Shown here: in pieces, positions 1 through 36,108 of the stretch
Position numbering within the stretch: position 1 is the stretch's first letter
How the letters are laid out: each line of letters begins with the position of its first letter
DNA from: Macrostomum lignano
Taxonomy: Eukaryota
DNA length: 38,026 nt
Assembly: GCA_002269645.1 (NCBI GenBank)
Contig: NIVC01004689.1
Coordinates: 1 to 38,026 of the forward strand
Direction: 5' to 3'
Notes under the pieces: generated by a model
Seen by the model: the letters and a program-made list of their open reading frames with translations, nothing else
The model's database searches: none
Told to the model about the DNA's origin: nothing
Position numbers and translations under genes: made by a program

Positions 1-3000
1 GTATGCCCGGCTGCTGGACAGCCTGACTGTCAAGTCGGAGACCGGGTTTCCTCTGCTGCCAGAGTCTTTTGCTGTCCCGGGCGATAAGGTTGGTTAATAA
101 ATTAGTTAATTTATTTTAATTATCTAAGTCATATTTCTCTGCAGCTATTTAGTCACTTCAAATCCCCATGTGAGTACATGTCATAATCATATATCCCAAA
201 TCCCCACGTGAGTTTCTCATTATGTATTGTATATCCCAAATCCCTAGGTGAGTTCCTCATCATCATGTATCCCAACTCCCCAGGTGATTTCTCCTCATCA
301 TATCCCAAATCCCCTAGGTGAGTTCCTCACTATATCCAAATCCCCTAGGTGAGTTCCTCACCATATATCCCAAATCCCCAGGTGAGTTCCTCATCATGTA
401 TATCCCAAATCCCCAGGTGAGTTCCTCATCATGTATATCCAAATCCCCAGGTGAGTTCCTCATCATATCCTAAATCCCTAGGTGAGTTCCTCACCATATC
501 CCAAATCCCCAGGTGAGTTTCTCATCATGTATATCCCAAATCCCCAGGTGAGTTCCTCACTATATCCCAAATCCCCAGTTGAGTTCCTTACCATATCCCA
601 AATCCCCAGGTGAGTTCCTCATGTATATCCCAAATCCCCAGGTGAGTTCCTCATCATGTATATCCCAAATCCCCAGGTGAGTTCCTTATCCTATATCCCA
701 AATACCCAGGTAAGTTCCTCCTCATCATTTATCCCAGATCCCAGGTGAGTTCCCAATCATATCCACCATAGGCACTCCATCGCTCCTTTCAATCCCATAC
801 TATCTGCAGGTAGCAAGTGAACGCTCTCACCCAGGCAGCCAGGACCGCCAGGCAGTGGGGCCGCTGCCCCACCTGTGGACTCAGTCAGTCTATGCACTGT
901 GCTGCCTACTAAGGGACGGGTTTCTGCGTCCCCAAGAGCTGGATCCCATCGGCAGGCGTCTGGCTCTGGAGCCGAAGCCCGACTTGGTGGTGCAGGTGGT
1001 TGTTATCGCCGAGGATGCCAAGATAAGGAAAACTCTGCAGTCAAGATTTGGGCTGAAGCAGGTGATTGTGGGCCAATATGCCTGTCAGTGTTAGATCAGG
1101 GGGTGGTGGGTGGCCCAGCAGCTGAGGATCTGGGAGGCTGGCCAGCAACTGAGGATCTGGGATGCTGGCCCAGCAACTGAGTGTCTGGGAGGCTGGCCCA
1201 GCAACTGAGGATCTGGGATGCTGGCCCAGCAACTGAGTGTCTGGGAGGCTGGCCCAGCAACTGGGGATCTGGGCAGTTGGCCCAGCAACTGGGGATCTGG
1301 GAGGCTGGCCCAGCAACTGGGGATCTGGGAGGCTGGCCCAGCAACTGGGGATCTGGGAGGCTGGCCCAGCAACTGGGGATCTGGGAGGCTGGCCCAGCAA
1401 CTGAGGATCTGGGCGGTTGGCCAGCAACTGAGGATCTGGGCGGTTGGCCCAGCAACTGAAAAACTTAGCAAGCCGCACCAGTCGGAGACTTGAATCCCCT
1501 TCGAACCCGCCTAGGTGCAAGACTTCAGCGAAGTCCACTCGGCCACCAGAATCCGAGTTTTTCCGGCCAAAGTGCTCGGTCATTTCTACCGCCATCTCGG
1601 CCGGTGTCCGACGCTGGGCCTGAGCGGCCGTCCAATCAGCGATGTCGGCATCCTGGCCACCAGCCGTTTGTACAATGTCGGCTCTCGAACGGTGGTCTTC
1701 ACGCCGCAGTTCCTGGATCACCACTCATTCTATTTAAGTCTGGACGTTAATTTCCTATTGGATCTGTTTCGCACCGATGTGGCCTACCTGAAGAGCACCT
1801 GGTCAGCCGTTGGCCGCCCGCTGTTCGTCATTCCGGTTTATCACTGGTATTTCAATCCGGACACTGCTGAGGCATCGCAGACTGCTCTGCTGACCACCAT
1901 CAGGAAACTGCAGAGCGGTTATATTAACGGCACCAGGTGAAAAGAAGGGCACTGAACTACTGGGCTGAGGGATGTAGATTTTTTAAAGGCATTGCGGATG
2001 CTCTATAGACTGTTACGAGCTATATAGATTTACATAAAGTGTGTGATCTTTCTCATAGAGTATGGGATCTTATATATATGGCTTGAATTCCTAATTTAGA
2101 GTATGGAATCTTACTTATAGAGTAGAGGATCTTACTTGTAGGGTATGGGATCTAATTTGTAGGGTATGGGATCTAATTTATAGGGTATGGGATCTAATTT
2201 GTAGGGTATGGGATCTAATTTGTAGGGTATGGGATCTAATTTGTAGGGTATGGGATCTAATTTGTAGGGTATGGGATCTAATTTGTAGGGTATGGGATCT
2301 AATTTGTAGGGTATGGGATCTAATTTTTAGGTTATGGAATTTTACTTGTAGGGTATGGTATCTTATTTTTAGGTTATGGAATTTTACTTGTAGGGTATGG
2401 TATCTTATTTTTAGGGTATGGGATCTCACTTCTAAGGTATGGGATCTCACTTCTAAGGTATGGGATCATACTTGTAGGGTATGGTATGCATTTTTTAGGG
2501 TATGGGTCTTACGTGGTCTGGTGTGAGTCAACGTTTCGATGTATGAGATTCAAAATACGGTTTTAGAGATATTTCATAGAAGCTTTAAAGTCCTTTTAGG
2601 GAACCAAATATCATAGTTTAATTTATAAGCAAACTCGTGAATCTCATTTCAGAGTCACTCTCGGCAATCTGGCTGACTTTGTGGACACCAGCTGCGTTAC
2701 TCAGATGTCATTTTTGAACTCCAGCCAGAGCGGTGCGTGTTGGGACTGCGGACCTCTATGAAACATCTGGGAGGGTGGCCTAGCAACTGGGGATCTGGGA
2801 GGCTGGCCCAGCAACTGGGGATCTGGGAGGCTGGCCCAGCAACTGGGGATCTGGGAGGCTGGCCCAGCAACTGGGAATTTGGGAGGCTGGCCCAGCAACT
2901 GGGGATTTGGGAGGCTGGCCCAGCAACTGGGGATCTGGGAGGCTGGCCCAGCAACTGGGGATCTGGGAGGCTGGCCCAGCAACTGGGGATCTGGGAGGCT

Positions 3001-5468
3001 GGCCCAGCAACTGGGGATTTGGGAGGCTGGCCCAGCAACTGGGGATTTGGGAGGCTGGCCCAGCAACTGGGGATTTGGGAGGCTGGCCCAGCAACTGGGG
3101 ATCTGGGAGGCTGGCCCAGCAACTGGGGATTTGGGAGGCTGGCCCAGCAACTGGGGATTTGGGAGGCTGGCCCAGCAACTGGGGATCTGGGAGGCTGGCC
3201 CAGCAACTGGGGATTTGGGAGGCTGGCCCAGCAACTGGGGATCTGGGAGGCTGGCCCAGCAACTGGGGATTTGGGAGGCTGGCCCAGCAACTGGGGATTT
3301 GGGAGGCTGGCCCAGCAACTGGGGATTTGGGATGCTGGCCCAGCAACTGGGGATTTGGGAGGCTGGCCCAGCAACTGGGGATTTGGGAGGCTGGCCCAGC
3401 AACTGAGGATCCCCCTCTCTCCTGCTCAGACGGGCTGCTGGCCAAGGCCAGGGCCACAGCGGCAAACGAGTCGGCCCTGTTCAGCCGCGGCCGCTGCCGC
3501 CTCGGTTCGACAGCCTCCGTCCACTCGAGGACTTTCGGCAGCAGCGAGTCATCGCCTGAGGACCAGTGCACGGTGCGCACTCGTTCTCGACGTCAACCGC
3601 CGAGTTCAGCAGCTGCTTCTGCTGCCGCCGCCGCCGCAGCTTCTCGTCGACGCAAGTCGCTAGTTTTGAGTAGCGCCGTGTCGGAGGAGCTCGGCGAAGA
3701 TCTGGACGTCACGGACGCCGGCTTCGGCCTCGATTCGTTCGCCATCCATGCCGCCGCTGCCGCTGCCGCCGCGGCAACTTCATCGTTTGACGAGGACAGA
3801 CAGCACAGCGTTGGTGAGTCTGAGTCTAGACTTCTCATGGGGAATTCCTTGGATGGGGATAGACTTCTCATGGGGGATTCCTTGGATGGGGATAGACTTC
3901 TCATGGGGAATTCCTTGGATGGGGATAGACTTCTCATGGGGAATTCCTTGGCTGGGGATAGACTTCTCATGGGGAATTCCTTGGATGGGGATAGACTTCT
4001 CATGGGGAATTCCTTGGTTGGGGATAGACTTCTCATGGGGAATTCCTTGGTTGGGGATAGACTTCTCATGGGGAATTCCTTGGTTGGGGATAGACTTCTC
4101 ATGGGGAATTCCTTGGTTGGGGATAGACTTCTCATGGGGAATTCCTTGGTTGGGATAGACTTCTCATGGGGAATTCCTTGGATGGGGATAGACTTCTTTG
4201 GTTGAGGCTACGATTCTCATGGAGAATTTGATTAGGCTGAAAATACCAAATAGGAAATTCTTCAGTAAGTTTCTTCCCATAGAAAATTCTTCGTAAGCCC
4301 GAGAGATTCAAGGATGAGTTCTGTTCGTCGCAGGCCGCAGGCAGGCCAAGCTCAGAAGCTCCGGTCTCGCATCGCTGCAGATGCCAAATCTTGGCCAAAT
4401 GCTTGCCAAAGTCGGGCACTCGCCAGACGACAATGCTAGTAAATTTAAAACAAAAAATTTTTTAGCGCCGCTATGTATCTCGCGGTTCTATTTATTGATT
4501 TAATGATTGACTTTGATTTGATGACTTTGATAATCCAATCATATGCTTTGAGATGCCCAATTTAAAGCCGAATATTGAATCCCTAAATCCCATTCAAAAT
4601 CACCAATCCCATAAACAGATTCACAAGTCCCATAAACAGATTCACAAATCCCATAAACAGATTCATAAATCACATAAACAGATTCACAAATCCCATAAAC
4701 AGATTCACAAATCCCATAAACAGATTCACAAGTCCCATAAACAGATTCACAAATCCCGTAAACAGATTCACAAATCACATAAACAGATTCACAAATCCCG
4801 TAAACAGATTCACAAATCACATAAACAGATTCACAAATCACATAAACAGATTCACAAATCCCGTAAACAGATTCACAAATCCCATAAACAGATTCACAAA
4901 TCCCGTAAACAGATTCACAAATCCCATAAACAGATTCACAAATCCCATAAACAGATTCACAAGTCCCATAAACAGATTCACAAGTCCCATAAACAGATTC
5001 ACAAGTCCCATAAACAGATTCACAAATCCCGTAAACAGATTCACAAATCCCATAAACAGATTCATAAATCACATAAATCCACAATATGTATCTTGCATCT
5101 CAAAACCCATATTTCATATTGTAAATTAGAAATTCCCAAACAATGCGGCATATTGCACAGCCTACGAATTGGTTGTGTTAGCTTCACATTCACGACTTTA
5201 ATCACTCTCAGACCACTCGTCTCCGTTGGCGATGGCCTACCAGCGACTGAACTCCGTGTGCGAGGGCTCCGGACTCAGACGGACCGCGTCTTGGCGAGCC
5301 GTCATCGAGGACTGCGAGGAGCTGTGCGAAGGGAAACTCGACAATAGCAGTGCGGCTTTTGTTCATGCTTTATTGGGACGCGCTTTCGCGCTTGGGAATC
5401 GTGTTTATACTGTATTGTCCCTGTGTGCTGCGGATAGCCTGTCTCTGGCAAAAGATAGACAGACAGAC

Positions 5469-8500: not shown

Positions 8501-11500
8501 CGGCAAAGAGTTTCGTGCGGAGTACAGTGAGTTTCACTTTCTGTTGCTATGGTCTTCTGTGCCAGTTTATTTGTTATTTTTGTTGCTGTTGTTGTTGTTG
8601 TTTTTTTTTGTTAGACAACATATCGTCTAGTCAATTTTATTTCTAACTTATATTGATTTGTTTGTCATTTTTGCAGCTCAAGACGAAAAAGTCACGCTTG
8701 AGGTAGGTGATATAGAACTTTTTACTGTCTACAAGGGCCTGTCGTGAAATTCACACCCCTTCACTGGTTGCTGGTCCACTGCCTCGCATTGATACTGACT
8801 GACACTATAGCACAGCCTCGGCTAAAATATGCATGGACACAGACACAGACACAGCCATAGACACAGACACAGACACAGACACAGCCACAGACACCCAGAC
8901 ACAGACACAGACACAGACACAGCCACAGACACAGCCACAGACACAGCCACAGACACAGCCACAGACACAGACACAGACACAGACGCAGGCACAAGCACAG
9001 ACACAGACACAGGCACAGGCACAGACGCAGACACAGACACAGGCACAGCCACAGACACAAGCACAGACACAGGCACAGACGCAGACACAACCGCAAGGCA
9101 CAGACACAGGCACAGACACAGACACAGACGCAGTCACAGACACAGACACAGACGCAGGCACAAGCACAAGCACAGACACTGACACAGACGCAGGCACAGG
9201 CACAGACACAGACACAAGCACAGACACAGGCACAGACGCAGACACAGGTACAGGTACAGACACAGACACAGACACAGACACAGACGCAGTCACAGACACA
9301 GACACAGACGCAGGCACAAGCACAAGCACAGACACAGACACAGACGCAGGCACAGACACAAAAAACAATCACAGACACAGACACAGACGCAGGCACAAGC
9401 ACAGACACAGACACAGACGCAGTCACAGACACAGACACAGACACAGACACAGGCACAAGCACAAGCACAGACACAGACACAGACACAGCCACAGACACAG
9501 CCACAGACACAACCGCAAGGCACAGACACAGTCACAGACACAGACACAGACACAGACGCAGGCACAAGCACAGAAACAGACACAGACGCGGTCACAGACA
9601 CAGACGCAGGCACAAGCACAGACACAGGCACAGACGCAGACACAGGTACAGGTACAGACACAGACACAGACACAGACACAAACGCGGGCACAAGCACAGA
9701 CACAGACACAGACACAGGCACAGGCACAGACGCAGACACAGACACAAGCACAGACACAGGCACAGACGCAGACACAGGTACAGGTACAGACACAGACACA
9801 GGCACAGACACAGACGCAGGCACAAGCACAGACACAGACACAGGTACAGACACAGGTACAGACACAGGCACAGACACAGACACAGACGCAGGCACAAGCA
9901 CAGACACAGACACAGACACAGTCACAGGCACAGGCACAGGCGCAAACACAGACGCAGGCACAGACACAGGCACAGACGCAGGCACAGACACAGGCACAGA
10001 CGCAGGCACAGACAGACACAGACAGACACAGGCACAGACACAGGCACAGACACAGGCACAGACACAGGCACAGACACAGGCACAGACACAGGCACAGACG
10101 CAGGCAGACACAGACAGGCACAGACACAGGCACAGACACAGGCACAGACACAGGCACAGACGCAGGCACTGACGCAGACACCCCGAACCCGCCTCCAGTC
10201 GGACAGCAGGCTCATAGATTTCCGCCCCCTATCGGCGGAGGCGGCGGAGACACGGCTGAACCAGACCATGAGCTCTGACAGGCGCGGCCAGTGGCTCCGC
10301 AGACGCAAAATCGACGGCGCCCTCAGTCGAGTTCCGGCCGGCTTTTATCGGCAGATGTGGCGCCTGCTGGAACGGGTGGACGGGCTGAACATTCGCGGCC
10401 ACATCATTGGCCAGCATCTGACCCGGGAGATGACCGCTGGGGAGCCAAAGTTTGCTCTGCAGGTTGGCTGCTGAACTGTGTGGGTTCTGTGGGATTCTGT
10501 GTGGGATTTTAGTAGATTGTGCTGAAGGCAATTTGGACTTTGAATTAACTTTTCAGGTGGAGTCCATCATCACATCCGTGCCTGTGCCCGAGTACCGGCA
10601 GCTGGTTGTGGAAGCTCTCAGCCTGCTGGTCCGCCTGCCGGATATGGATCCCGATGGCCGCCTTGCTGGGCTGCAGGTTGGTGCTGCTTGGGTCTGGGAG
10701 GCTGGCCCAGCAACTGGGGATCTGGGAGGCTGGCCCAGCAACTGGGGATCTGGGAGGCTGGCCCAGCAACTGGGGATCTGGGAGGCTGGCCCAGCAACTG
10801 GGGATCTGGGAGGCTGGCCCAGCAACTGAGGATCTGGGAGGCTGGCCCAGCAACTGAGGATCTGGGAGGCTTGCCCAGCAACTGGGGATCTGAGAGACTG
10901 GCCCAGCAACTGAGGATCTGAGAGGCTGGCCCAGCAACTGGGGATCTGGGAGGCTGGCCCAGCAACTGACACTCTGGGAGGCTGGCCCAGAAACTGGGGA
11001 TCTGGGAGGCTGGCCCAGCAACTGGGGATCTGGGAGGCTGGCCCAGAAACTAAGGATCTGGGAGGCTGGCCTTAGCAACTGGGGATCTGGGAGGCTGGCC
11101 TAGCAACTGGGGATCTGGGAGGCTGGCCCAGCAACTGAGATCTGGGAGGCTGGCCCAGCAACTGGGGATCTGGGAGGCTGGCCCAGCAACTGACACTCTG
11201 GGAGGCTGGCCCAGAAACTGGGGATCTGGGAGGCTGGCCCAGCAACTGGGGATCTGGGAGGCTGGCCCAGAAACTAAGGATCTGGGAGGCTGGCCTTAGC
11301 AACTGGGGATCTGGGAGGCTGGCCTAGCAACTGGGGATCTGGGAGGCTGGCCCAGCAACTGAGATCTGGGAGGCTGGCCCAGCAACTGGGGATCTGGGAG
11401 GCTGGCCCAGCAACTGGGGATCTGGGAGGCTCCAAAAAGCATCCGAGAACCCCAAACCACCTATCCGCAGGGCCGGGTGCTGCCTGTGGAGCAGCTGGTC

Positions 11501-14627: not shown

Positions 14628-17600
14628 CTAGTTTGACACAAGCGCGAAGAACTCTCGGATTTCGGCCTCGGACATGACGCTCGTGGCCATTGCAATGGCG
14701 CGCACTGCTCCTTTAAACATCCGGGCATCGTTAAGTCGCTTGCCGAACCGGAAGCAGCTCGGTGAGATAAAATCGAAATCGGTTTTTGAAGTGACAGTCA
14801 CAGTGGACGGAGGCAAAAAGCCGCTTCCCAGGAAAATTCCCCAAGAGTCGGCTGAAGGCGTTGATGTGAAGCCCAGATTCACCCACTCACTGGCGCTCGA
14901 AGTCATTGGATAATTTGAGGTCACGTAGACCTGTGGAACGCTGCTGGCTTGAGTCTTGATAAAGACGTACGGTTTTAAAGGTTCACCATGTTCCCAAATG
15001 TGGCTATAAAATCGACCGGTTTCGAAGTCAGCACAGTTTAGAAAATCGAAGAAGGCCTGCACCTGCGGCTGCCGCTTCATCCTGAGCAGCACCGTGACGC
15101 CTGTGCCGAACCCGATGTCGCTCTTGTTCATGGCCAGAAACGAGCTGCTCCCATCGAACGCGGCGCCCTCCTCTGTCCACTGGACTCCGACCGGATAAAT
15201 TCGGTTGGTCTCTTCGTCAGCCTGGCACACGACATTCTCAAATGCAGACATGTCGTCTCCGAGCCACACGTTTGTGAGCTTCGGGTTGAGCTGAGCCGGA
15301 TATTTGATCGGAAATCGGATGAGCACTCGGCAGTCGCTGCTCGCACCGCCAGAGACAAGGTCGCGACACACGGACTGGTAGCGGAAGAGAATGCAGCGGA
15401 GAGAGGCCGGCTCGAACTGGGCCACAATGATTCCGACTTTCTGTTTGTTCGACGCGATCACAGAGCAGTGCACATCGCTGCTCGCCTGCGCTCGGTAAAT
15501 CGCGACGGCCTCCGGCAGGCACCGCACCTGCATCTGAGTCCAGGTGTCTCCGGTCCCGCACTGGCACACTGCCAGCAGGCACGATATGAACACCCTAGAT
15601 GAAATCGTCATGCCATTTCTTAGCAGATCTGTCTGGAGCTTCTCGCTACGTTCTTGCAAGAACGTAACAGATCTGCACTATTAAAATATATAGGCAGAAC
15701 TTACAAGATCTGCAGGAAGATCTTGCATGGTCTGCACGAGCAGATCTTAGGAGATCTGGGCAGATCTTGTAAGATGTATTAAGCTTTACCAATTGAATGC
15801 ATTGTCCGTCTTATCAAATCTTCCCAGATCTGTTTAGTAATCCATTTATAAAACCCCAATGCACTAATTTAATTCCAATAAAGAACACGAGTTATGACAG
15901 GACTTTCTTATTTGATTCTGCACTTTTAGTATTGTGCTAGTAAGCTGCCAGAACAAAAGCAAATGTCATTGAACAATCAAAATAAAGTAGGCATATTTAT
16001 TTGTGAAAATGTAAACAAATACACATATATGCTCATGAAATAAAACTTGTATGCACAAGGGAAATAGCACAAGCAAAAAATAAGTCAGCTTCAAAACAAA
16101 AGTTAAGCACACATTCAATAGGAAAAATACTAATGGTACAATGGACTAATAAAATTAGGGTGAGCAATACTTTTAGAAACTAAAAAATAGAAGCAGAAAC
16201 ATTTGAAAAAAACCAGGTGCATCTTTTACTACAATGTACAATTAAATTGGTTTGCAAATAATTGAAACTGAAAGAGTCCAGTACTGAACATACATGCACA
16301 ACTTTGGGAATCACCCGGCCGTTTCTATTGGCAACACACACATGTAAGTCGCTATTGGCTGAGAGCAGTCACGTGACTACTATTCCATCCAATAGCGACT
16401 TACATGTGTGTGTGTGTTGCCAATAGAAACGGCCGAGGGAATCCCAAAGTTGCTCCCAAGCATGGTACTGAAAGATTTTAAAGTCAATATTGCTAGAAAG
16501 CTTACTTTGTTATCAATAAAAGTAGGTCTATAAGAGCTCTTAGTAATACTTAAGGGCTCTTTATCATGTTGCATTTTTACTTTAGGCTGGCTTCATTTTT
16601 TCTTTTAGCAATCATAGGATGCTTGCCACTTTGCCACTTGGTATAAAGACAAGCTTGGAACCCATAAGTAGCGATGCCATATTGACCATGTAAAGTAGCT
16701 GCAATGAAAGGGAAAATTGTAGTAAAGTTCTGGGATTTTAAACATTAATATTCAATTCAAAATAACTAAAATATAAAACAAATATCGTTGTTATGTTTTT
16801 AAATAGTCAGAGTAATAACTTTTGTAAAAGTTCTTTTAGACCTAATTAAATTTAGACCTATGTTTTTCTTCTATTCTATATTTTTCATATTATTTATCTA
16901 GGCCTATCTAGTATAAATACTTTTAGATTTTGCTATGCCTATATATATTCTTCAAATAGTAGGTCAAGGCTTAAGATAACTTTCTAACAACCATAAGCCT
17001 ATATTTAAGCATCCAGGTTTAATTCTAATTCATAAAAACTATACCCTATATAGCAATTACAATTTTTAGTAGAGTAGGGCCTTTTTATTTTAAAATTAAA
17101 ATGATAAGCCTAGTTATAACACTATTTACTAAAAATAGAAATTACACTCTTAACCTAAGTGTTTAAAATCAAGGAGGGATTAAAACCAAGTTTTACAGAT
17201 ATGTCAGTCTACCTATTTATAAATCTAGATAAGCATATATAAAACAAACAAAAACAGAATAGACCTATTTAATTAAGATTTACTTACTAGCTAGGTCACT
17301 AGAACTAGCCTAGCCCTAGCCTAGCCTAGGGGCTATAACTAGGTATGTATATATAAATATAATATAATGAAATGCAAAAGACTACAAAAAATACTGATCT
17401 ATGTATGTAAACTGAATTTCTGAATTATTAATGGATTAATGAATTATTAATGGACAACATCACTAGGTCTACTGTAGACATGCATTCTGTTTCTATTAAA
17501 GCATAGAACAAAGTCATAGGCCTAGGCCTACTCATACTTATAGGCCTGGGAGTAGGAAACAAGCCTAGATATATATATGATATAGATATATATATAGCAT

Positions 17601-18457
17601 ATCATACATTTTATAGTCAGTCTGTCAATTATGTCAAATTTTTTTAATTGATGACGCAATCTGCTCTTCATTTAAAGCCATAGCTATACTCAATCAAAAA
17701 AGTTATTATGGCTAAAAAAAGTAAAAAACAGTGATACTACACTGTGAAACAATTTAAGGAATTAAAAATTACGTATTCGGCTAAGTCAAAAGAAAGAACT
17801 GAGATAGATGGATAAATTGCAAGAGCGAGAATTCAAACTATAAGGGTCCACTATGTTCAGAACTGCGGAAAAAATATTTAAACAAATTCATTTACTGTTG
17901 GCTGCCAGAAGAACAACTAAAATAAATACAAATCATTAAAAAACGTAATTACTATTATGTTAAATATTTTGTGGAAAAAAACAATTCAGACACTTTTCAA
18001 AACTGGTCTGTACAGATCTGCAAGAACTGATCTGACAAGATCCAGCAGAGAAATGTGAAAATATACGAAAGTCTTTTTTCTGATATACAGTTGGAAATTT
18101 TGTTTTCTCTTTACCTAATAAGTATTTTCTAAAAAATCACGAATGTTTTTTACGTACCAAACAATAAAAAATGGCTTGCAAAGATTTGTAAGATCTTGTA
18201 AGACAAAAGCAGATACAGATCTGCTAAGAGATTTAAGTAAGAACAGATCTGTTAAGAATGTGTTAACCAAAATTCACAGATCTGCTAAGAAATTTAAGTA
18301 AGAACAGATCTGCCAAGAATGAGTAAACAGAACTTCATCTAGGGCAGCGAGACTCCTAGAACTTTTTGACAACGAAATAGGAATTGAACAGGTGATTTCT
18401 TATCAATTCCACATTCTAATGATTATCATTTACTTTAACTGATTTACCTGTTCTCAT
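14628..18457 (-). CDS. Secreted protein (signal peptide, Cys-containing PAN/Apple-like region, LamG/ConA-like domain), 327 aa once the transposon is removed; interrupted by a transposon
   Basis: Exon 1 is 18457-18448 (ATG AGA ACA G|gtaaat). A 92-nt intron ends ttctag. Exon 2 is 18355-18345, joined across the TE to 15590-14628. This gives MRTGVSLFISCLLAVCQCG-TGDTW... (984 nt, in frame). The C-terminal half has LamG_3-type motifs (GAAFDGSSSFL, WVNLGFT, FKGAVRAIAMATSVMSEAEIREF). AATAAA lies on the minus strand at 14589-14584. Confidence 0.8.
15593..18344. mobile_element. Non-autonomous CACTA/EnSpm (CMC superfamily)-type DNA transposon, 2752 bp
   Basis: Terminal inverted repeats CCCTAGATGAA (15593-15603) and TTCATCTAGGG (18334-18344), extending imperfectly to ~40 bp. 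2-bp target-site duplication CA (15591-92 and 18345-46). Many CAGATCT subterminal repeats at both ends. AT-rich interior with no transposase ORF. Removing it restores the host ORF. CMCWR termini with a 2-bp TSD are typical of animal CMC/EnSpm elements. Confidence 0.85.
16299..16452. repeat. Long inverted repeat (hairpin): ~60-bp arms and 30-nt loop, inside the transposon
   Basis: The left arm CAACTTTGGGAATCACCCGGCCGTTTCTATTGGCAACACACACATGTAAGTCGCTATTGG (16299-16358) is nearly the reverse complement of 16389-16452. The loop contains the palindrome AGTCACGTGACT. Confidence 0.9.
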
Positions 18458-19165: not shown

Positions 19166-19295
19166 TCTCACCCTCTGTCTCCCAGTCTCACCCTCTGTCT
19201 CCCAGTCTCACCCTCTGTCTCCCAGTCTCACCCTCTGTCTCCCCGCATTCCCTCTGTCTCCCCGCCTCTTCCTCTGTCTCCCCGCCTCTTCCTCT
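19166..19295. repeat. Pyrimidine-rich ~20-bp repeat CCCTCTGTCTCCCAGTCTCA
   Basis: Tandem copies directly after the PHKA-tail duplicate. Confidence 0.85.
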
Positions 19296-19296
19296 G

Positions 19297-21085
19297 AAGA
19301 ATAAAGAATGAAGAATGAAGAATGAAGAATGCAGAATGCAGAATGAAGAATGAAGAATGCAGAATGCAGAATGCAGAATGAAGAATGAAGAATGAAGAAT
19401 GCAGAATGAAGAATGCAGAATGCAGAATGCAGAATGCAGAATGCAGAATGAAGAATGCAGAATGCAGAATGAAGAATGAATAATTCAGAATGCAGAATGA
19501 AGAATGAATAATTCAGAATGCAGAATGAAGAAGGAATAATTCAGAATGCAGAATGAAGAATGAAGAATGTAGAATGAAGAATGTAGAATGAAGAATGCAG
19601 AATGAAGAATGCAGAATGCAGAATGAAGAATACAGAATGAAGAACGAATAATTCAGAATGCAGAATGAAGAATGCAGAATGCAGAATGAAGAATGTAGAA
19701 TGCAGAATAAAGAATGAAGAATGTAGAATGAAGAATGCAGAATGCAGAATGAAGAATGCAGAATGCAGAATAAAGAATACAGAATGAAGAATGTAGAATG
19801 CAGAATGAAGAATGAATAATTCAGAATGCAGAATGAAGAATGAAGAATGAAGAATGAAGAATGCAGAATGAAGAATGCAGAATGTAGAATGCAGAATGAA
19901 GAATGAATAATTCAGAATGCAGAATGAAGAATACAGAATGAAGAATGTAGAATGCAGAATGAAGAATGAATAATTCAGAATGCAGAATGAAGAATGAAGA
20001 ATGAAGAATGTAGAATGAAGAATGAAGAATGTAGAATGAAGAATGAAGAATGCAGAATGAAGAATGCAGAATGTAGAATGCAGAATGAAGAATGAATAAT
20101 TCAGAATGCAGAATGAAGAATACAGAATGAAGAATGTAGAATGCAGAATGAAGAATGAATAATTCAGAATGCAGAATGAAGAATGCAGAATGAAGAATGA
20201 AGAATGAAGAATGTAGAATGCAGAATGAAGAATGCAGAATGAAGAATGCAGAATGAAGAATGAAGAATGAAGAGTGAAGAATGCAGAATGAAGAATGAAG
20301 AATCCAGAATGAAGAATGAAGAATGAAGAATGAAGAATGAAAAATGAAGAATGCGGAATGAAGAATGCAGAATGAAGAATGAAGAATGAAGAATCCAGAA
20401 TGAAGAATGAAGAATGAAAAATGAAGAATGCGGAATGAAGAATGCAGAATGAAGAATGAAGAATGAAGAATCCAGAATGAAGAATGAAGAATGAAGAATG
20501 AAGAATGCAGAATGAAGAATGAAGAATTAAAAATTAAAAATGAAGAATTAAAAATTAAAAATGAAGAATTAAAAATAAAAAATGAAGAATTAAAAATTAA
20601 AAATGAAGAATTAAAAATTAAAAATGAAGAATTAAAAATTAAAAATGAAGAATTAAAAATTAAAAATGAAGAATTAAAAATTAAAAATGAAGAATTAAAA
20701 ATTAAAAATTTAAAATTAAAAATTAAAAATGAATAATGAATAACGAAGAATGCAGAATGAAGAATGCAGAATGAAGAATGCAGAATGAAGAGTTAAAAAT
20801 GAAAAATGAAGAATGAAGAATGAAGAAAGAAGAAAGAAGAATGAAAAATAAAAAATGAAAAATGAAAGATGAAGAATGAAGAATGAAGAATGAAGAAAGA
20901 AGAATGAAGAATGAAAAATGAAAAATGAAAAAAATGAAAAATGAAGAATTCAGAATGAAGAATGAAGAATGAAGAATGAAGAAAGCAGAATGAATAATTC
21001 AGAATGCAGAATAAAGAATACAGAATGAAGAATGAAGAATTCAGAATGAAGAATGAAGAATGAAGAATGAAGAATGCAGAAAAAA
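19297..21085. repeat. 7-bp satellite (GAATGAA/GAATGCA)n with an embedded 21-bp AATGAAGAATTAAAAATTAAA block (~20515-20730)
   Basis: Directly visible 1.8-kb array. Confidence 0.95.
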
Positions 21086-28941: not shown

Positions 28942-31900
28942 AATGTCAAGCACTGCGCCAATGGGAATCGGAAGCTCTGTCCAAACAGAGTGACTTCATC
29001 GCCACAGATCGACTGACGTTTCTAACTGGTGTCGGCTCTGGCCAGCGACTTCGTTATCGAATACTCCCAGCAACTGAGTGGGAAGACCTTAGCCTAGTTG
29101 AGGCTGTGTTCTGTCTGATGAAGCTCAGGCATAGGAAACTGCTCAAAATGCGAGATACAAACACGATGGATGAGTTTAGGAACAAGCTGATGGATATTTG
29201 CGGCCTGGTATGTCCTCGTTTGGGATTCACGGTTGCTCTGTTTACATGTAGCTAGCCTCTCACCGCTGCGCCTCATTTCCTTCTATCTCTCACCCTGTCT
29301 CTCTCCCTGTCTCTCCCTGTCTCTCTCCCTGTATCTCCCTGTCTCTCTCTCTCCCTGTCTCTCCATGTCTCTCTCCCTGTATCTCCCTGTCTCTCTCTCC
29401 CTGTCTCTCTCCCTGTCTCTCCCTGTCTCTCCCTGTCTCTCTCCCTGTATCTCCCTTTCTCTCTCTCTCCCTGTCTCTCCATGTCTCTCTCCCTGTATCT
29501 CCCTTTCTCTCTCTCTCCCTGTCTCTCCATGTCTCTCTCCCTGTATCTCCCTTTCTCTCTCTCTCCCTGTCTCTCCATGTCTCTCTCCCTGTCTCTCCCT
29601 GTCTCTCCCTGTCTCTCTCCCTGTATCTCCCTTTCTCTCTCTCTCTCCCTGTCTCTCCATGTCTCTCTCCCTGTCTCTCTCCCTGTCTCTCCCTGTATCT
29701 CCCTGTCTCTCTCTCCCTGTCTCTCCCTGTCTCTCTCCCTGTTTCTCTCTCTCCCTGTTTCTCTTTCTCCCCATCTCTCACCCTGTCTCTCCCTTTCTCT
29801 CCCTGTCTCTCTCCCTATATCTCTCCCTGTCTCTCCCTGTCTCTCCCTGTCTCTCTCCCTGTATCTCCCTGTCTCTCTCCCTGTATCTCCGTCTCTCTCT
29901 CCCTATGTCTCCCCCTGTCTCTCTCCCTGTCTCTCTCCCTGTCTCTCTCCCTGTCTCTCTCCCTGTCTCTCTCCCTGTCTTCCTGTCTCTCTCCCTGTCT
30001 CTCTCCCTGTCCAATGGCGTCTCTCTATGTCTCTCCCTGTCTCTCCCCGTCTCTCTCCCTGTCTCTCCCTGTCTCTCCCTGTCTCTCTCCCTGTCTCTCC
30101 CTGTCTCTCCCTGTCTCTCTCCCTGTCTCTCCCTGTCTCTCCCTGTCTCTCCCCATCTTTCCCTCTCTCTCCTCTGCTTTTGCAGTCGGACAGAAACGGA
30201 AATGAAAGTAGCAGCAGCAGCGTATTCAGCAGTGAATGCAGCGGCGAAAGCAGCGGCGAAAGCAGCAATGACGAACAGAAAAGCGATTCAGCCGCAATGG
30301 CGTCAGCATTTCACCGTCTATTCGGTCTGAATATTCGGGTTCACCCCGGTAACGAAATGTACAATTATAAATTGTTAACTTTTGGCGACTGTAACAACGG
30401 CAATGACAGCGTTGATATCGGTCACGTGTATGGCACATTGTATGTGCCTCTGGACGGTGCACTGGCGCCTGGTTAGTAAGATGTTAATGCTGTTGTGATG
30501 AATGTTATAAACAGTATGTAGGCACACATATGCTGTCTATGGTCATAGCAGCAGCTAGTGGGTCAGCTGGGTTTATCAGAGTCTTCAACAAAATCATAAA
30601 CAGACTAATGTCATATGCATTGAACACGAGGTCATAAATATAGACACAATGCTATCGACATAGATTAGACACAATCCCATAGAAGTTGCAGCCATGGAGG
30701 AAAGAATATCTCTCCCTGTCCCTGTATAAAGAATCTTTCCTCAATGATTGCAGCCTCAGAAAACAAGGAATACATCATGGTCATAAATAAGCAATGGCAG
30801 ATGACCATAAAACTAAACGTTGTCATAAACAAAGAAGCAAACTAACAAAAAGCTTATGCAGGATCATAACCGCAGTTTATAACCCTGGTAAATCATACCC
30901 AACTCCAACCAGACTCAGTCGAGGCCGAACTGCGCAACCCCCTCTAAACCGATTGGTCGAACGAATCGCAGCGGAAATTCAAACCAATCGACAATTAAGC
31001 CAGAGTCATCGGAATTCGAACTCAAATTCAGATGAAGTTGACCCAGAGGTGGCGGCCGCGGCTCTGGCTGCGGCTCGAGCTAGCGAACTCAATCGCATCC
31101 TGAATCTGTTCGAAGGTGTCCAACAGTATGACGAATCGTGCGAACCGCCTGCCGTTTCTGTCAATGCCGATTTCAAGCGTCGTTTAGATGACGATCCGAC
31201 GCGATACCGACTGTGCACGGTTGAGTGCGTCAAGAACCGCTCAGGGCAGAGGTTCGGCGTGCCAGTCAATCGACAGGATGACGGACTGAATCAGATTCAA
31301 CTAAAAAACCCGGGCAGTTGGTTTCCTGGTGAACAGGTGTGGTATAATTAGTTATCGGTTGAGACTTTTACTCTACACTTAAGGCCAGTTTTTTGCTGAA
31401 AAACGCATCAACAACACAGGAAGACGTTTTTCTTTTTGGCACGCGTTTTGTTTAAGGTTAATTTTCATGTTTATGAAACTAATTCCATCTCCTATAGGGA
31501 ATCAATACTCAGATAAAATCATTTCCTAGATCAATTTGCAATTTGGAAGGTAAGAACGTTGAGACGACCTTTTTCAATTAGCAGGTGCTGGAAATTGATT
31601 ACAGATTTAGAGATTAGAGATTTTTGTTTTAGATGTCAGGCCTATTTGGCGTTGTACTAACCACAGTCAACTATGCTTAACTTCTTGCTAGTCTCGCTGA
31701 CCCTCTAACTAAGTACCGACTAATTAATGTTTCGTTAACTCAGGTGGTGGTGGAGCTCCTGGACCAGGTGCAACCCAACGGTGCATCCAAGGGCCGCGTC
31801 CTCGGCTACTACAAGCGCCAGTTGCGCTACAACTTCCTCGGCCACCAGCAGCTGCAGGAACTCCTGGCTGAGCAGCCGGATCGCTTCAAAATTTGCACTC

Positions 31901-34900
31901 TTGAGCTGAACGGCGTCCAAGGCGGCTCGGCAGTTCCGGTCGACCCCAGCGACCCGATCGCCCGCATCGAGATCAACGGGCGCGAGAACTGCGGCAGGGC
32001 CTGCGCCAACGACCAGGTGGTGGTGGAGATTATGGAGAGAAAAGGCGCTGACCCGGCTAATAAAGAGGTCAAAGGACGCGTTGTTGGCATGCATCAGCAG
32101 GTGCGAATTTATTAAGCTCTTTTCTCGTTTCTAAACTCTTAGGGCATCGACTTGTTCTTGGTTTGAGTCTGGCATGCTGTCAGTCAGGAAGGTGTTGGAG
32201 ACTGATCACAATAATCCCTGAAGAACCTGCAACTCCTAAACACTCCTTCTGAATCATTTTTAACAGGCGGAGAAGCTGCGCTACCAGCTGTTTCTCTGCG
32301 AAGTGCTCAGCAACGTTGGCGCACTGATGCGACCGTTGTGCGGCACCTTCCCAAAGATTGCCTATGACAATTCGATTGCTCAGAAAGCTCTGAAGGAAAT
32401 GCCTGACAATGGGTTTGATGGACACGAGGAACGCAGCGGTACAGGGCAGCAACAAGTGACACAGAATCGGGACCACGTCCTAAGCATCGACCGCGACTTT
32501 GTGTCCGTCTTCTCGCCGAGAAAGTGAGTGGCATTTTTCTTACTGTTTAGTACGAGTATCCGGCATACAATTTCGATTAAATATTTTCTGAGTTCGGGTC
32601 ACATATCCGATAACATTGATGCTATTCTCTTTTGTACTAATAGAAAGGATTATTTCTTTAAAAGCGCTACGCTGGTTTGATTATTTCTTCAAATTTTGAT
32701 CAACGCTTCTTTTAAAATTACGTTGTTGTGTCAAAATTTTGTTTCAAATTTTTCCTATTTTCTTGTTCGATGCCCTCTCTCTACGCTGGGCACTCAAAAG
32801 GGTCCCTAATGTTCTAAAAATTAAAAATTTTTCTATGTTTTCTAAATACTAATTCCGTCTTTTTCGACTGTAGGGACTCTAAAGGAAAAATCTACTTTGA
32901 GCACGACCGCTGTCAGCGAGTGAACAAAGAATTCTGTGAGCAGACTTTTCTGGTGTGCTTCGAGTATTGGCATCTGGACAAGAACTACCCCATGGGAAAG
33001 GTGGTCTACGTTCTCGAAAACACCGACGGCTCGCTGGCAGAGGCGTTCGGCCTCATCCAGATGCGACACCGGCTGCCTCGTCCGCTGCGAGATTCAAAGG
33101 AGTTGCGCAATCAGGTGGCTAACGTGCAGCAAAAGGCGAACAGCATGGGTCTAAGGGGCCGGCTAGACATGCGTAAGGTGCTCACCGTTACCATTGACAA
33201 CCCGGACACGCGGGACATGGACGACGCAATCAGCTACGAGCGTTGCTACTCAACAGGCGTAGAAACCGTTGGAGTTCACATCACCGACATCTGCGAGTTC
33301 ATCGGCAGGAAGGGCTCCCCGCTGGACCGTGTGGCTCGGGGTCGCCTCCGAACCATCTACCCGCCTAAGGTGGGCAAGTCGCTGCAGCAGGTGACACCAA
33401 ACCACATGCTGCCGAAAACTCTGGCTGAAGACGTGCTCAGCCTCGGCGAAGGATCCGACAGATTCTGTCTGAGTGTGCTCTTCAAGTTCAAGCGTGACAA
33501 AAAAGTAAGATCTTTACAAGTAAGATCTAAGCCTTTTATACAGAATAAAGTAATTTTAGCTAAACCAGCTGACGCACCGACTTAAAATTCAATAAGATGT
33601 GTGTGACATCTCAGATTCTATGTGGACCTGATGTAATCGAATTAGCTTGCAATTTTACTTACATTACTCACTTTTAGAGCTCTGCGAACCTCCTCTGGGA
33701 ACATCCCGAGTTCCACCAGACCGTCGTTCGCAGCGACCTCCGGCTCAACAAGATCGACGTGCAGCCGGTGCTGCTGGAGACCGAGCGCAGCGCCGACAGC
33801 TTCGGAGACCGCCTGACTCCCGACTTCGTGTCGATGCTGCGCTCTCTGTGGGACATCGCTCGATGCCTGCGGCTGAAGCGGCTTGGTGAGGCCGGCTTCC
33901 AGCTGCAGGACGACGACTTCTGCGACGACGACGACGAGCAGGGAGCCATCGGGCGGACCTTCGAGACCAGCTGCCTCATCGAGGAACTCATGGTGCTGGC
34001 CAACCTGTCGGTAGGTCAGTGGTTGGCAGAGCAGCAGCGGCCGGTTGTGGCTCGAGTCCAGGACGAGCCCCGACCTGCCGAGGTCCAGAATTGGCTCGGT
34101 AAATTCGGTCCGACGCTGGTGCACATGCCGCGACTGCAGCGCGATCTTCGAGGCCTTCGAGTCTCGTTTAGTCTGTGCAAATTTCCGCTGTCTCTGTCTC
34201 GAGCTGACTATGACTTCATCATGAAGTACCAAATCGGTAGGCCTCGCGATTGCGTCCTACGGCTCATGCACGACAGTCGCCATCCGCACATGATGCTGGC
34301 CCTCAGTGAGTGGTTCTCCATCACACAGCCTGCGCAATATGCACCGACGGCGGACGAGAATCCAGCTGAAGAAGCTCGGCGCAAGGTGTACCACTTCAGC
34401 TTGCAGCAGGCGAACTATGTGCACTTTACAAGCCCCATGCGTCGCTATCCGGATATTGTTGTCCACAGGGCGTTCCGAGCGGCGATTAACAATCAGCAGC
34501 AAGGCCCGGCGACAGGAGAGACGTCCGAAAGTCTTAGCGATCTGTGCGACTCACTTCGAACCCTGGAGCGTAGAGTCAAAATGTTCGAGAAGGACTCCAT
34601 GAGCTACGCCTACGCCAGCCGTCTGAAGCGACGCCCACAGCAAGAGCTCGTGGTGTTGCGCTCCATCGACGACGGCGAGATGTCCTTCACGAGTAGCCGC
34701 CTTCGCCGCATGCCCAAGATACTGGGAGTCGTGAAGATGTCCAGCTTTGGACTGAATGCTCGACCTGAGCCTCGAGGACTTGGAAAGTTTCGCTGCAAAT
34801 GGAGCCGACGCATTTTCGTGCATTCGTCATGCGAAGACTCATCAAGATACAACACTCCAGTACTTCATTACATTGGTAGTGAGGTTCGTGTTAAGCGAGA

Positions 34901-36108
34901 CGTTTACGTCCAGCGCGTCAATTGCGATCCTGTAGTGAAGCTGCGCAAGGATTTCATCAGTTCCGGCGCCAATTACGAGTCAGTTCGGGGCCAGTTTCGC
35001 CAGCTGCAAGACGTTGTGCTTGAAGATCAAGGTGCCTGGATGATCACCTGTGAGAATGACCAGCTCGCTGTCGGAGCGAATGAACAGCTTCTGGTGTCGG
35101 GCAAGCCAGTCCAGTTCTACCGCGAGTTCGCGGTCGGCGATATCATGCGGCTGCAGTTCCGAGCGCAGTTGCGTCAGGGCCTGCTAACGCCCAGCGTTGC
35201 GCTGATCGAAGTGTGCGGCAGCCACACGGTGTGCGTAACGCACAAGGACGATCCCGTGCGCTGCTTCGCGGAGGTGACGGATGTCAAGTCCAAGCCCTCG
35301 TACCGCGACATCGACGAGTACGCGACCATCTGGCAGCGCATCGTGGCCATCGAGTCTGCCACCATCGCAGCATCGACTGATGACAGCGTCATCCTGCATG
35401 AGGTGGCGCTCGACTGGAGCTACCACCAGCCCACTGAACGGTGGCTGGGTGCCTTCCATCTGCCAGAAGATTTTCGCATCAAGTATCAACTGAAGTTTGG
35501 AACTGACGCCTCAGCTCACGATCCAATGATTGATGAGAAATTGAATGATCTTGAAGGGCAGCACGGACGCGGAGGTGGCGACAGCCTCAGCAAAGTTGCT
35601 GTAAACGAAGCTTTTGAGCTTGCAGGCGAGCGGGACAGGTACTTTCTTTTTAACTAAACGCTTTACAGTTTTTATTACTATTTTTTAGTTTGTATTCTTT
35701 TACTTCCTTTCAAACTTTCTTTGTCGAAACAGGTACAGCGAATTTCTTTGCGTACGGTTTCCCGGCGACAGCTCCAAAGCTGCTAGTTCCCAGGACTACT
35801 TCACGGCAGTTGCTCACGGTGGCATCCTGCTAGCTTACCGAACTGTGCACGGTCGGTGCCGTAATTGTAACTTTAAAAGAGACGAAGACTTTTCCTACGA
35901 CTGCCAGATTGTCGTGTTTTCACTGCAGCAGCACGACTTGTGCCAGCGATTCGATTGGTCCAGCGTGTCCACAGCCACCGTGGAGGTGATGCAGAAGTTT
36001 CTGCCAATCCGACGCCAGGAGTTGGCGCTGTGGCGCCTTCCGGCGATGCCAGCACATCGTTGGCGCACAAGATCGCCCTGTTAGGCTCGAGAGAAGCTCG
36101 AATCTCGG
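28942..36108 (+). CDS. HELZ2: HELZ2 (PRIC285)-like RNB/RNase II-family 3'-5' exoribonuclease(-helicase); partial, ~1530 aa visible, 5' end unresolved, SF1 helicase expected beyond the window
   Basis: Phase-consistent exons: 28942-29207, 30186-30471, 30876-31336, 31744-32100, 32267-32523, 32874-33504, 33678-35638, 35733-36108. RNB motifs: VTIDNPDTRDMDDAI, VGVHITDI, HMLPKTLAEDVLSL, LIEELMVLAN, HFSLQQANYVHFTSPMRRYPDIVVHR. The post-RNB blocks VCVTHKDDPVRCF, YRDIDEYATIW..IVAIESAT..DDSVILHEVALDW, FLCVRF, AVAHG and TVEVMQK resemble the HELZ2 linker rather than DIS3/DIS3L. Probable frameshift near 36038. Confidence 0.85.
29270..30170. repeat. CT-rich compound minisatellite (TCTCTCCCTG-type) in an intron of the HELZ2-like gene
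   Basis: Fills intron 29208-30185; reverse-complement relative of 5955-7010. Confidence 0.9.
33190..33228 (+). other. RNase II/RNB catalytic Asp motif TIDNPDTRDMDDA
   Basis: Matches the RNase II pattern TID-x5-D-x-D-D-A with all four aspartates present. Confidence 0.9.

Follow-up and report, generated by a model that had tools for sequence, protein, structure and literature searches.

What is the 2752-bp stretch of DNA that interrupts a gene for a secreted protein in the flatworm Macrostomum lignano, and what does it do to that gene? The locus lies on contig NIVC01004689.1 (assembly GCA_002269645.1), of which 38,026 nucleotides were analysed; this whole stretch is termed the 38-kb window. 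The host gene is on the minus strand, and the inserted element, at positions 15593-18344, interrupts its exon 2, 11 nt after the exon start and within the codons of the signal peptide. The element is probably a non-autonomous cut-and-paste DNA transposon of the TRC/CMC kind. This reading is carried by its terminal repeats, by the short duplication that flanks them, and by the repeat arrays beneath both ends, and we infer both the superfamily and the mobilisation of the element in trans.

Anatomy and boundaries of the element

The element begins and ends with perfect 11-bp terminal inverted repeats (TIRs) of the sequence CCCTAGATGAA. Only two copies of this 11-mer are present in the window, on opposite strands and each at one end of the element, against a chance expectation of 0.018 copies for a given 11-mer. 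The left junction reads ...GATATGAACA and continues across the boundary as CCCTAGATGAAATCG, and the right junction reads ...CTTCATCTAGGG and continues as CAGCGAGACTCC. Directly outside each end lies the dinucleotide CA (15591-92 and 18345-46), which is a putative target-site duplication. Composition breaks at both junctions, the fraction of G+C (GC) being 0.60 in the left coding flank compared with 0.30-0.41 within the element.

Short repeats are concentrated beneath both ends. The window contains 22 AGATCT hexamers, of which 14 lie in the outer ends of the element (8 in the left 250 bp and 6 in the right 350 bp) and none in its 2.1-kb core, a clustering with a Poisson P of 7.5e-24. These hexamers are embedded in longer units with a consensus of roughly TTCTTRNCAGATCTG. 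In addition, mirrored motifs of 16-18 nt are present at both ends; a perfect inverted copy of the 18-nt unit ATTTCTTAGCAGATCTGT, which is located 22 nt from the left end, is found close to the right end. A tandem duplication of 61 bp (18215-18336, 87% identity) is also part of the right end.

No coding capacity was found in the element. It contains no open reading frame (ORF) longer than 64 amino acids (aa), and none of its six ORFs of at least 50 aa has a Pfam match; it is therefore classed as non-autonomous. No further copy is present in the 38-kb window. A pattern built from the terminal repeat and the first subterminal motif gave 0 matches in metagenome and viral contig collections, where flatworm DNA is not expected, and Rfam and tRNA scans of the window gave no matches. 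The parts of the element and its immediate flanks are as follows.

15591-15592, unstranded: left flanking CA, putative target-site duplication, identical to 18345-18346
15593-15603, plus strand: left TIR CCCTAGATGAA, whose second window copy is inverted at 18334-18344
15593-15842, unstranded: left subterminal region with 8 AGATCT-core repeats (hexamer positions, direct and inverted repeat families)
15843-17994, unstranded: AT-rich core, GC 0.31, with no ORF longer than 64 aa and no AGATCT (ORF list, Pfam, composition)
17995-18344, unstranded: right subterminal region with 6 AGATCT-core repeats and the 61-bp tandem duplication (repeat finding, hexamer positions)
18334-18344, minus strand: right TIR, TTCATCTAGGG on the plus strand (11-mer search)
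18345-18346, unstranded: right flanking CA (sequence comparison of flanks)

An initial annotation of this DNA had proposed a transposon with TIRs in the signal-peptide exon of an otherwise intact gene, and had described its TIRs and target-site duplication as intact. Both descriptions hold, given the perfect 11-bp repeats, the CA on each side and the 14 AGATCT-core repeats at the ends. It may be asked whether the junctions are instead an assembly artefact, that is, a chimeric join with no real insertion behind it, as repeats make up more than 50% of the genome and redundancy is a feature of its assemblies (PMC5730564). However, both junctions are base-precise, with matching TIRs and a flanking duplication, and the left junction is also contained in a UniProt gene model that derives from an assembly of its own. 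The chance that the insertion is such an artefact is close to negligible.

The interrupted gene and its protein

When the two flanks are joined and one CA is removed, they form a continuous 984-nt frame that starts MRTGVSLFISCLLAVCQCG and ends with the stop at 14630-14628. The 320 codons downstream of the element contain no stop, as the initial annotation had stated, and none of 20,000 shuffles of the same stretch is stop-free. Moreover, the encoded protein aligns with relatives over residues 4-318, with no sign of a frameshift. The gene model has four parts.

18448-18457, minus strand: coding part of exon 1, 10 nt, ATGAGAACAG, with its ATG at 18457-18455 (predicted model)
18356-18447, minus strand: intron 1, 92 nt, from a GTAAAT donor to a TTCTAG acceptor (predicted model)
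18345-18355, minus strand: initial 11 nt of exon 2, GAGTCTCGCTG, separated by the element from the remaining exon (sequence)
14628-15590, minus strand: remainder of exon 2, 320 codons and the stop at 14630-14628 (ORF list)

Codons 7 and 8, which the element separates, belong to the hydrophobic core of the signal peptide. The last part of the signal peptide (FISCLLAVCQC) and the mature protein in full are encoded by the remainder of exon 2. That this single exon, 14628-15590, encodes the complete mature protein is concluded because a relative termed P0006 (345 aa, 34% identity) has the same kind of C-terminal ending, ...EIREFFELVT compared with ...EIREFFALVSN in the host protein, together with its own N-terminal signal peptide. 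The product of the host gene is a secreted protein of roughly 330 aa that belongs to a lineage-specific family.

Exon 1 and its intron are predicted from the sequence, and the prediction is one of several that keep the frame. All ATG codons within about 550 bp upstream were enumerated, with or without one GT..AG intron, and the stop-free in-frame paths number 17, 8, 10, 17 and 8 when 0, 1, 2, 3 and 4 bp are removed, respectively. Restoration of the frame is therefore no proof of a 2-bp duplication. The best donor (GTAAAT) belongs to the path given above, which is also the most economical one and is the best available model. With the 2-bp CA duplication, the predicted empty site is ...CGCTGTTCATATCG... 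/ ...CTCGCTGTTCATATCG.... The gene had earlier been described as exactly reconstructable; the join itself stands as the best model, while its exactness was overstated, given the many alternative paths and the possibility of a shifted boundary.

Such a shift would arise from the palindromic CTAG core of the TIR, which allows the duplication to be read as TA, as in Tc1/mariner-like elements, or as CTAG, with TIRs of 5-6 bp and an empty site of ...CGCTGCCCTAGGGTGTTC... / ...CTGCCCTAGGGTGTTC.... The gene would then start with a spliced leader that carries an ATG and is joined to the acceptor at 18356/18355, giving MESRCPRVFISCLLAVCQCG (MESRCPRVFISC...). This acceptor is exactly in frame with the 3′ ATG of the leader, the result is a plausible signal peptide, and trans-splicing is common in M. 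lignano. However, coincidence in the host flanks would then have to account for both the inverted CCC/GGG (or CC/GG) and the direct CA/CA, with a combined chance of about 1/1000 for TA by our own estimate. In addition, the TA of Tc1/mariner elements flanks TIRs that are usually at least 20 bp long, so that the 6-bp TIR left by a TA reading, like one of 5 bp, is atypical, and subterminal AGATCT arrays are not a feature of that superfamily. A shifted boundary thus has a very small probability, and the 2-bp CA boundary is used in what follows. The element was also considered as an ordinary intron and rejected, since it has no GT at its start, the nearest internal donor leaves an in-frame TAG, and the AG of the TIR is out of frame with exon 1.

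A search with the host protein among 5.8 billion proteins gave only three matches, all of them M. lignano proteins, and no Pfam match was found for it. With one of the three, P0002 (UniProt A0A1I8FCA1), 60% of the query aligns at 100% identity. An exhaustive profile-free search gave 28 relatives, several of which align across query residues 4-318, and the close paralogues have 83-85% identity to the host protein. P0006 is encoded as a single uninterrupted full-length ORF on an environmental contig (L001, 1132 bp, Joint Genome Institute metagenome 3300040776), which places a member of the family outside the M. lignano reference proteome.

A look at paralogues had been suggested as a check on the reconstruction, and the model of the closest one, P0030 (in the same 90% cluster as P0003), reads MPPENWIFLVLQLLGFLTVCQC without interruption at the matching position. 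The architecture of the family is therefore a signal peptide directly before ...VCQC. No uninterrupted allele is among the proteins found in the searches. No contigs encoding P0002, P0003, P0030 or two start-codon versions of the window ORF are on record.

Host residues about 57-176 (14925-15512, minus strand) are 100% identical to P0001, P0003 and P0030, which differ clearly on either side of this block. To judge from the aligned sequences, the block suggests recent gene conversion within the host family. In P0001, the N-terminal half of the protein is present twice in tandem.

The AlphaFold2 model of the host protein is confident, with a mean predicted local distance difference test score (pLDDT) of 84.6 and a predicted template modelling score (pTM) of 0.81. 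The protein is predicted to fold as a lectin-like jelly roll to which an alpha/beta part is added at the N-terminus. Its top fold matches are the N-terminal, lectin-like half of clostridial neurotoxin receptor-binding domains, an accessory domain of GH43 arabinanase and the LamG domain of NEL, with sequence identities of 7-15% and query TM-scores of 0.4-0.5. The model is read as a generic concanavalin-A-like/LamG fold; the resemblance is at the level of the fold only, with no sign of a toxin.

Placement among transposon superfamilies

The initial annotation had called the element CACTA/EnSpm-type. In the strict sense of plant CACTA/EnSpm elements, which have CACTA termini and a 3-bp target-site duplication, this does not hold. 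The termini here are CCCTAGATGAA / TTCATCTAGGG, and a left end extended to CAC would require GTG at the right, where the flank is CAG. Moreover, the 3-bp flanks are ACA and CAG, of which only CA is repeated. The subterminal arrays in both orientations that are expected of CACTA/EnSpm elements are present, with AGATCT-core repeats at both ends and none in the middle. In the wide sense, which includes animal TRC elements, the name probably stands. TRC elements are filed under EnSpm/CACTA or CMC, and their signature is a terminal repeat that starts with CCC together with a 2-bp duplication. The M. lignano element runs from CCC to GGG, and CA lies on each side of this single copy.

Elements with this signature were initially reported from the flatworm Schistosoma: SmTRC1 of Schistosoma mansoni and its relatives in Tribolium and Aedes have TIRs that start with CCC and 2-bp duplications (DeMarco et al., PMC1636069). 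The Tribolium terminal repeat begins CCCTAG, as does that of the M. lignano element (PMC1636069). In Hydra, Spongebob was assigned to the TRC group of the CACTA superfamily on the basis of CCC termini and a 2-bp duplication, and its duplications vary in sequence (TC, TT, AA, TA and CA) (PMC4298943). TRC elements can also have short TIRs (10 bp in Aedes), they are present in flatworms, and non-autonomous derivatives are common (PMC1636069, PMC4298943). Duplications in CMC elements are 2-4 bp long (PMC4482050), and those of the wider CMCT clade are given in the literature as 2-5 bp. The M. lignano element also differs from these elements. The TIR of SmTRC1 is 54 bp long compared with 11 bp here, the M. 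lignano element has no Transposase_21 ORF or identified partner, and dense subterminal arrays of the AGATCT-core type are not described for TRC elements in the literature searched.

Maize En/Spm has 13-bp TIRs, and the few hundred bp next to either end contain numerous short subterminal repeats in both orientations. Its dSpm/I derivatives are non-autonomous internal deletions; they are located in genes, and their mobilisation takes place in trans. The M. lignano element resembles En/Spm in its short TIRs and its subterminal repeats in both orientations (background in PMC1636069), but it starts with CCCTA rather than CACTA, has a duplication of 2 rather than 3 bp, and is found in an animal. It has the layout known from elements with transposition proteins that bind to subterminal sites, of which En/Spm is the classical example.

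The element combines CCC termini, a 2-bp duplication and subterminal repeats, and an animal CACTA-related placement is therefore the most plausible. In such a case, a transposase supplied in trans would have made a 2-bp-staggered cut at a target CA in exon 2 of the gene for the roughly 330-aa secreted jelly-roll protein, and the element would have been inserted with duplication of the CA. The transposases of TRC/CMC elements carry a Transposase_21-type DDE domain with C(2)C and H(3-4)H motifs, and the AGATCT-core arrays presumably bind the transposase or an accessory protein.

Several observations weigh against this account of the locus. Non-autonomous elements are classified in Repbase by a working rule of the same duplication length and at least 10/11 terminal bases matching a classified family (PMC4455052), and the present element matches 8/11 bases of the Tribolium repeat CCCTAGTAGCA, the sole CCCTAG-type TRC repeat printed in the literature searched. 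No transposase is linked to the element, a single copy is seen in the 38-kb window, and 11 bp is short for a terminal repeat. A 2-bp match such as CA is expected by chance at 1/16. The exon 1 and intron model is not unique, since alternative ATG and splice paths, or a shifted boundary, also give in-frame signal peptides. Finally, with respect to loss of function, the element end offers an in-frame ATG and in-frame AG acceptors, which are described in the next section.

Some of these points would also fit a real non-autonomous transposon from a superfamily other than CMC/TRC, whether unclassified, piggyBac-like or another type that starts with CCCTAG by chance. CCC...GGG termini are a hallmark of piggyBac, and the first seven bases, CCCTAGA, equal those of the classical piggyBac terminal repeat. 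However, piggyBac requires a TTAA duplication, which is absent at both junctions (the 4-bp flanks are AACA and CAGC), and it does not have such subterminal arrays. ISL2EU shares the 2-bp length of the duplication but duplicates AT within A/AT/T and has GG termini (PMC4482050), compared with CA and CCC here. The missing transposase and the 8/11 match favour another superfamily, as do the invariable CAC...GTG termini of other animal CMC groups (PMC4079192, PMC6004678), since the CCC...GGG of this element does not conform to the Chapaev/CAC type. On the other side, only CMC is known to give 2-bp duplications of variable sequence, and subterminal repeat arrays are classical for En/Spm. A different superfamily is thus unlikely, and TRC/CMC remains the preferred placement. 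Duplications of 3, 4, 5, 8 or 9 bp were also considered and rejected, as the flanks do not match.

Consequences for the gene and surroundings of the locus

The event is an ordinary gene-disrupting insertion. Translation from the original ATG stops one codon into the element, after MRTGVSLP, and a transcript from the original start would carry its coding sequence no further than this codon. A search for splices that would bypass the element from exon 1 and recover the frame gave none; the AG of the TIR is out of frame, and so, by inspection, are the other nearby acceptors. This copy of the gene is most likely a null allele for the original mRNA, and loss of function of the host gene would be expected from the sequence.

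A different outcome is suggested by the left end of the element, in which the host frame stays open for 29 codons, up to 15677. Two features in this end are relevant.

15609-15611, minus strand: in-frame ATG within the element, giving MTISSRV followed by FISCLLAVCQCG (ORF reading)
15595-15596, minus strand: AG inside the TIR (TCTAG before GG), with the P0002 model starting at the next base, 15594 (P0002 alignment)

The gene may not be knocked out if the end of the element supplies a new 5′ end, either through the ATG at 15611-15609 or through a spliced leader added at an in-frame AG, so that the secreted protein is still made. The ATG has a G(-3) context, and the replacement N-terminus is as hydrophobic as the original, with a Kyte-Doolittle maximum over 9 residues of 2.98 compared with 2.93. 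In-frame AG acceptors lie within the element at 15677, 15641, 15638 and 15632. It has been established that the M. lignano spliced leader ends in ...TTGCATG (PMC5173321), and thus in an ATG, and that 38.8% of M. lignano genes are trans-spliced (PMC5730564). The intact 320-codon ORF and the start of the P0002 model exactly after the AG of the TIR also speak for a rescue of this kind. However, by our own estimate chance alone would place an in-frame ATG in the 20 or so codons upstream in roughly 1 in 4 or 5 cases, and a two-codon upstream ORF, ATGGCATGA, overlaps the candidate start. Moreover, the P0002 acceptor (exon start 15594) is out of frame in the window, and P0002 may be an annotation artefact. 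Continued production of the protein from a new 5′ end is a minor possibility, though one to be taken seriously. It is slightly more doubtful still that the transposon end has been co-opted as the 5′ end of the gene, with a start or a trans-splice site within its last ~100 bp and with the first seven residues of the signal peptide encoded by the transposon.

The P0002 model deserves a closer description. The gene model of A0A1I8FCA1 was built on its own genome assembly, and its residues 1-26 match 15594..15517 at 100% identity, with the first codon at 15594-15592, two bases of which come from the TIR. As this codon uses TIR bases, the insertion is present in the assembly behind A0A1I8FCA1 too. 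The alignment shows that the annotation pipeline took the CTAG of the TIR as an exon start. The start of P0002 is in the +1 frame relative to the window, and the true frame is regained through three residues, VPA (residues 27-29; window 15517-15512), which have no counterpart in the window. This VPA stretch may be an indel difference between assemblies or an annotation artefact.

The age of the insertion can be read in two ways. Either a young insertion or the existence of several paralogues of the gene would explain why the 320 codons are intact; the intact ORF and the perfect ends fit a young insertion, or else one that is tolerated owing to the close paralogues. The element also contains one internal feature that bears on its own age.

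16276-16466, unstranded: GC-richer, near-perfect foldback of 191 bp (folding energy and composition)

This foldback has a DNA folding energy of -71.8 kcal/mol (z = -15) and a GC of 0.48, compared with 0.30 in the surrounding element. A 9-bp direct repeat, ACTGAAAGA, borders it at 16267-75 and 16467-75, and the window contains no other copy of this sequence. The foldback resembles a miniature inverted-repeat element nested in the larger one, with a target-site duplication of 9 bp, which suggests that the element copy, or its master, is not brand new.

The locus is of interest mostly for annotation, as an example of a non-autonomous DNA transposon family of the TRC/CMC type, with CCC termini and a 2-bp duplication, in M. 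lignano. No CACTA-type element is described for this species in the Macrostomum literature searched. Should the family be active and have autonomous partners, M. lignano, the only flatworm in which transgenesis is routine, would possess in it a candidate endogenous tool or mutagen. In addition, a palindromic TIR that contains CTAG can mislead gene models, as in the A0A1I8FCA1 model, which starts inside the repeat. The locus has no bearing on a long-standing open question, and its modest extra interest lies in the possible replacement of a 5′ end by the element. If this were true, a DNA-transposon terminus would rescue the very exon that it interrupted, and trans-splicing would make such a rescue unusually easy in M. 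lignano. The locus is also a simple test case for whether trans-splicing buffers insertions into 5′ exons.

The surroundings of the gene are rich in repeats. The M. lignano genome consists of more than 50% repeats, with 13% tandem repeats and 3% DNA transposons, and features hidden tetraploidy and a redundant assembly (PMC5730564, PMC12801592). The window fits this published description, as minisatellite arrays are abundant in it; its distinct mini- and microsatellite arrays number more than 20. One of them, a TGAAGAA array of 1.8 kb (19295-21081), lies immediately upstream of the host gene. A 28-bp satellite unit, TGGGAGGCTGGCCCAGCAACTGGGGATT, forms three separate arrays at 1111-1459, 2768-3410 and 10693-11431. 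On the plus strand, the exons of a neighbouring gene at 31744-35657 encode an OB_HELZ2 domain, a weak sub-threshold match to OST-HTH/LOTUS and an RNB exoribonuclease domain; this gene probably encodes a HELZ2- or DIS3-like 3′-5′ exoribonuclease.

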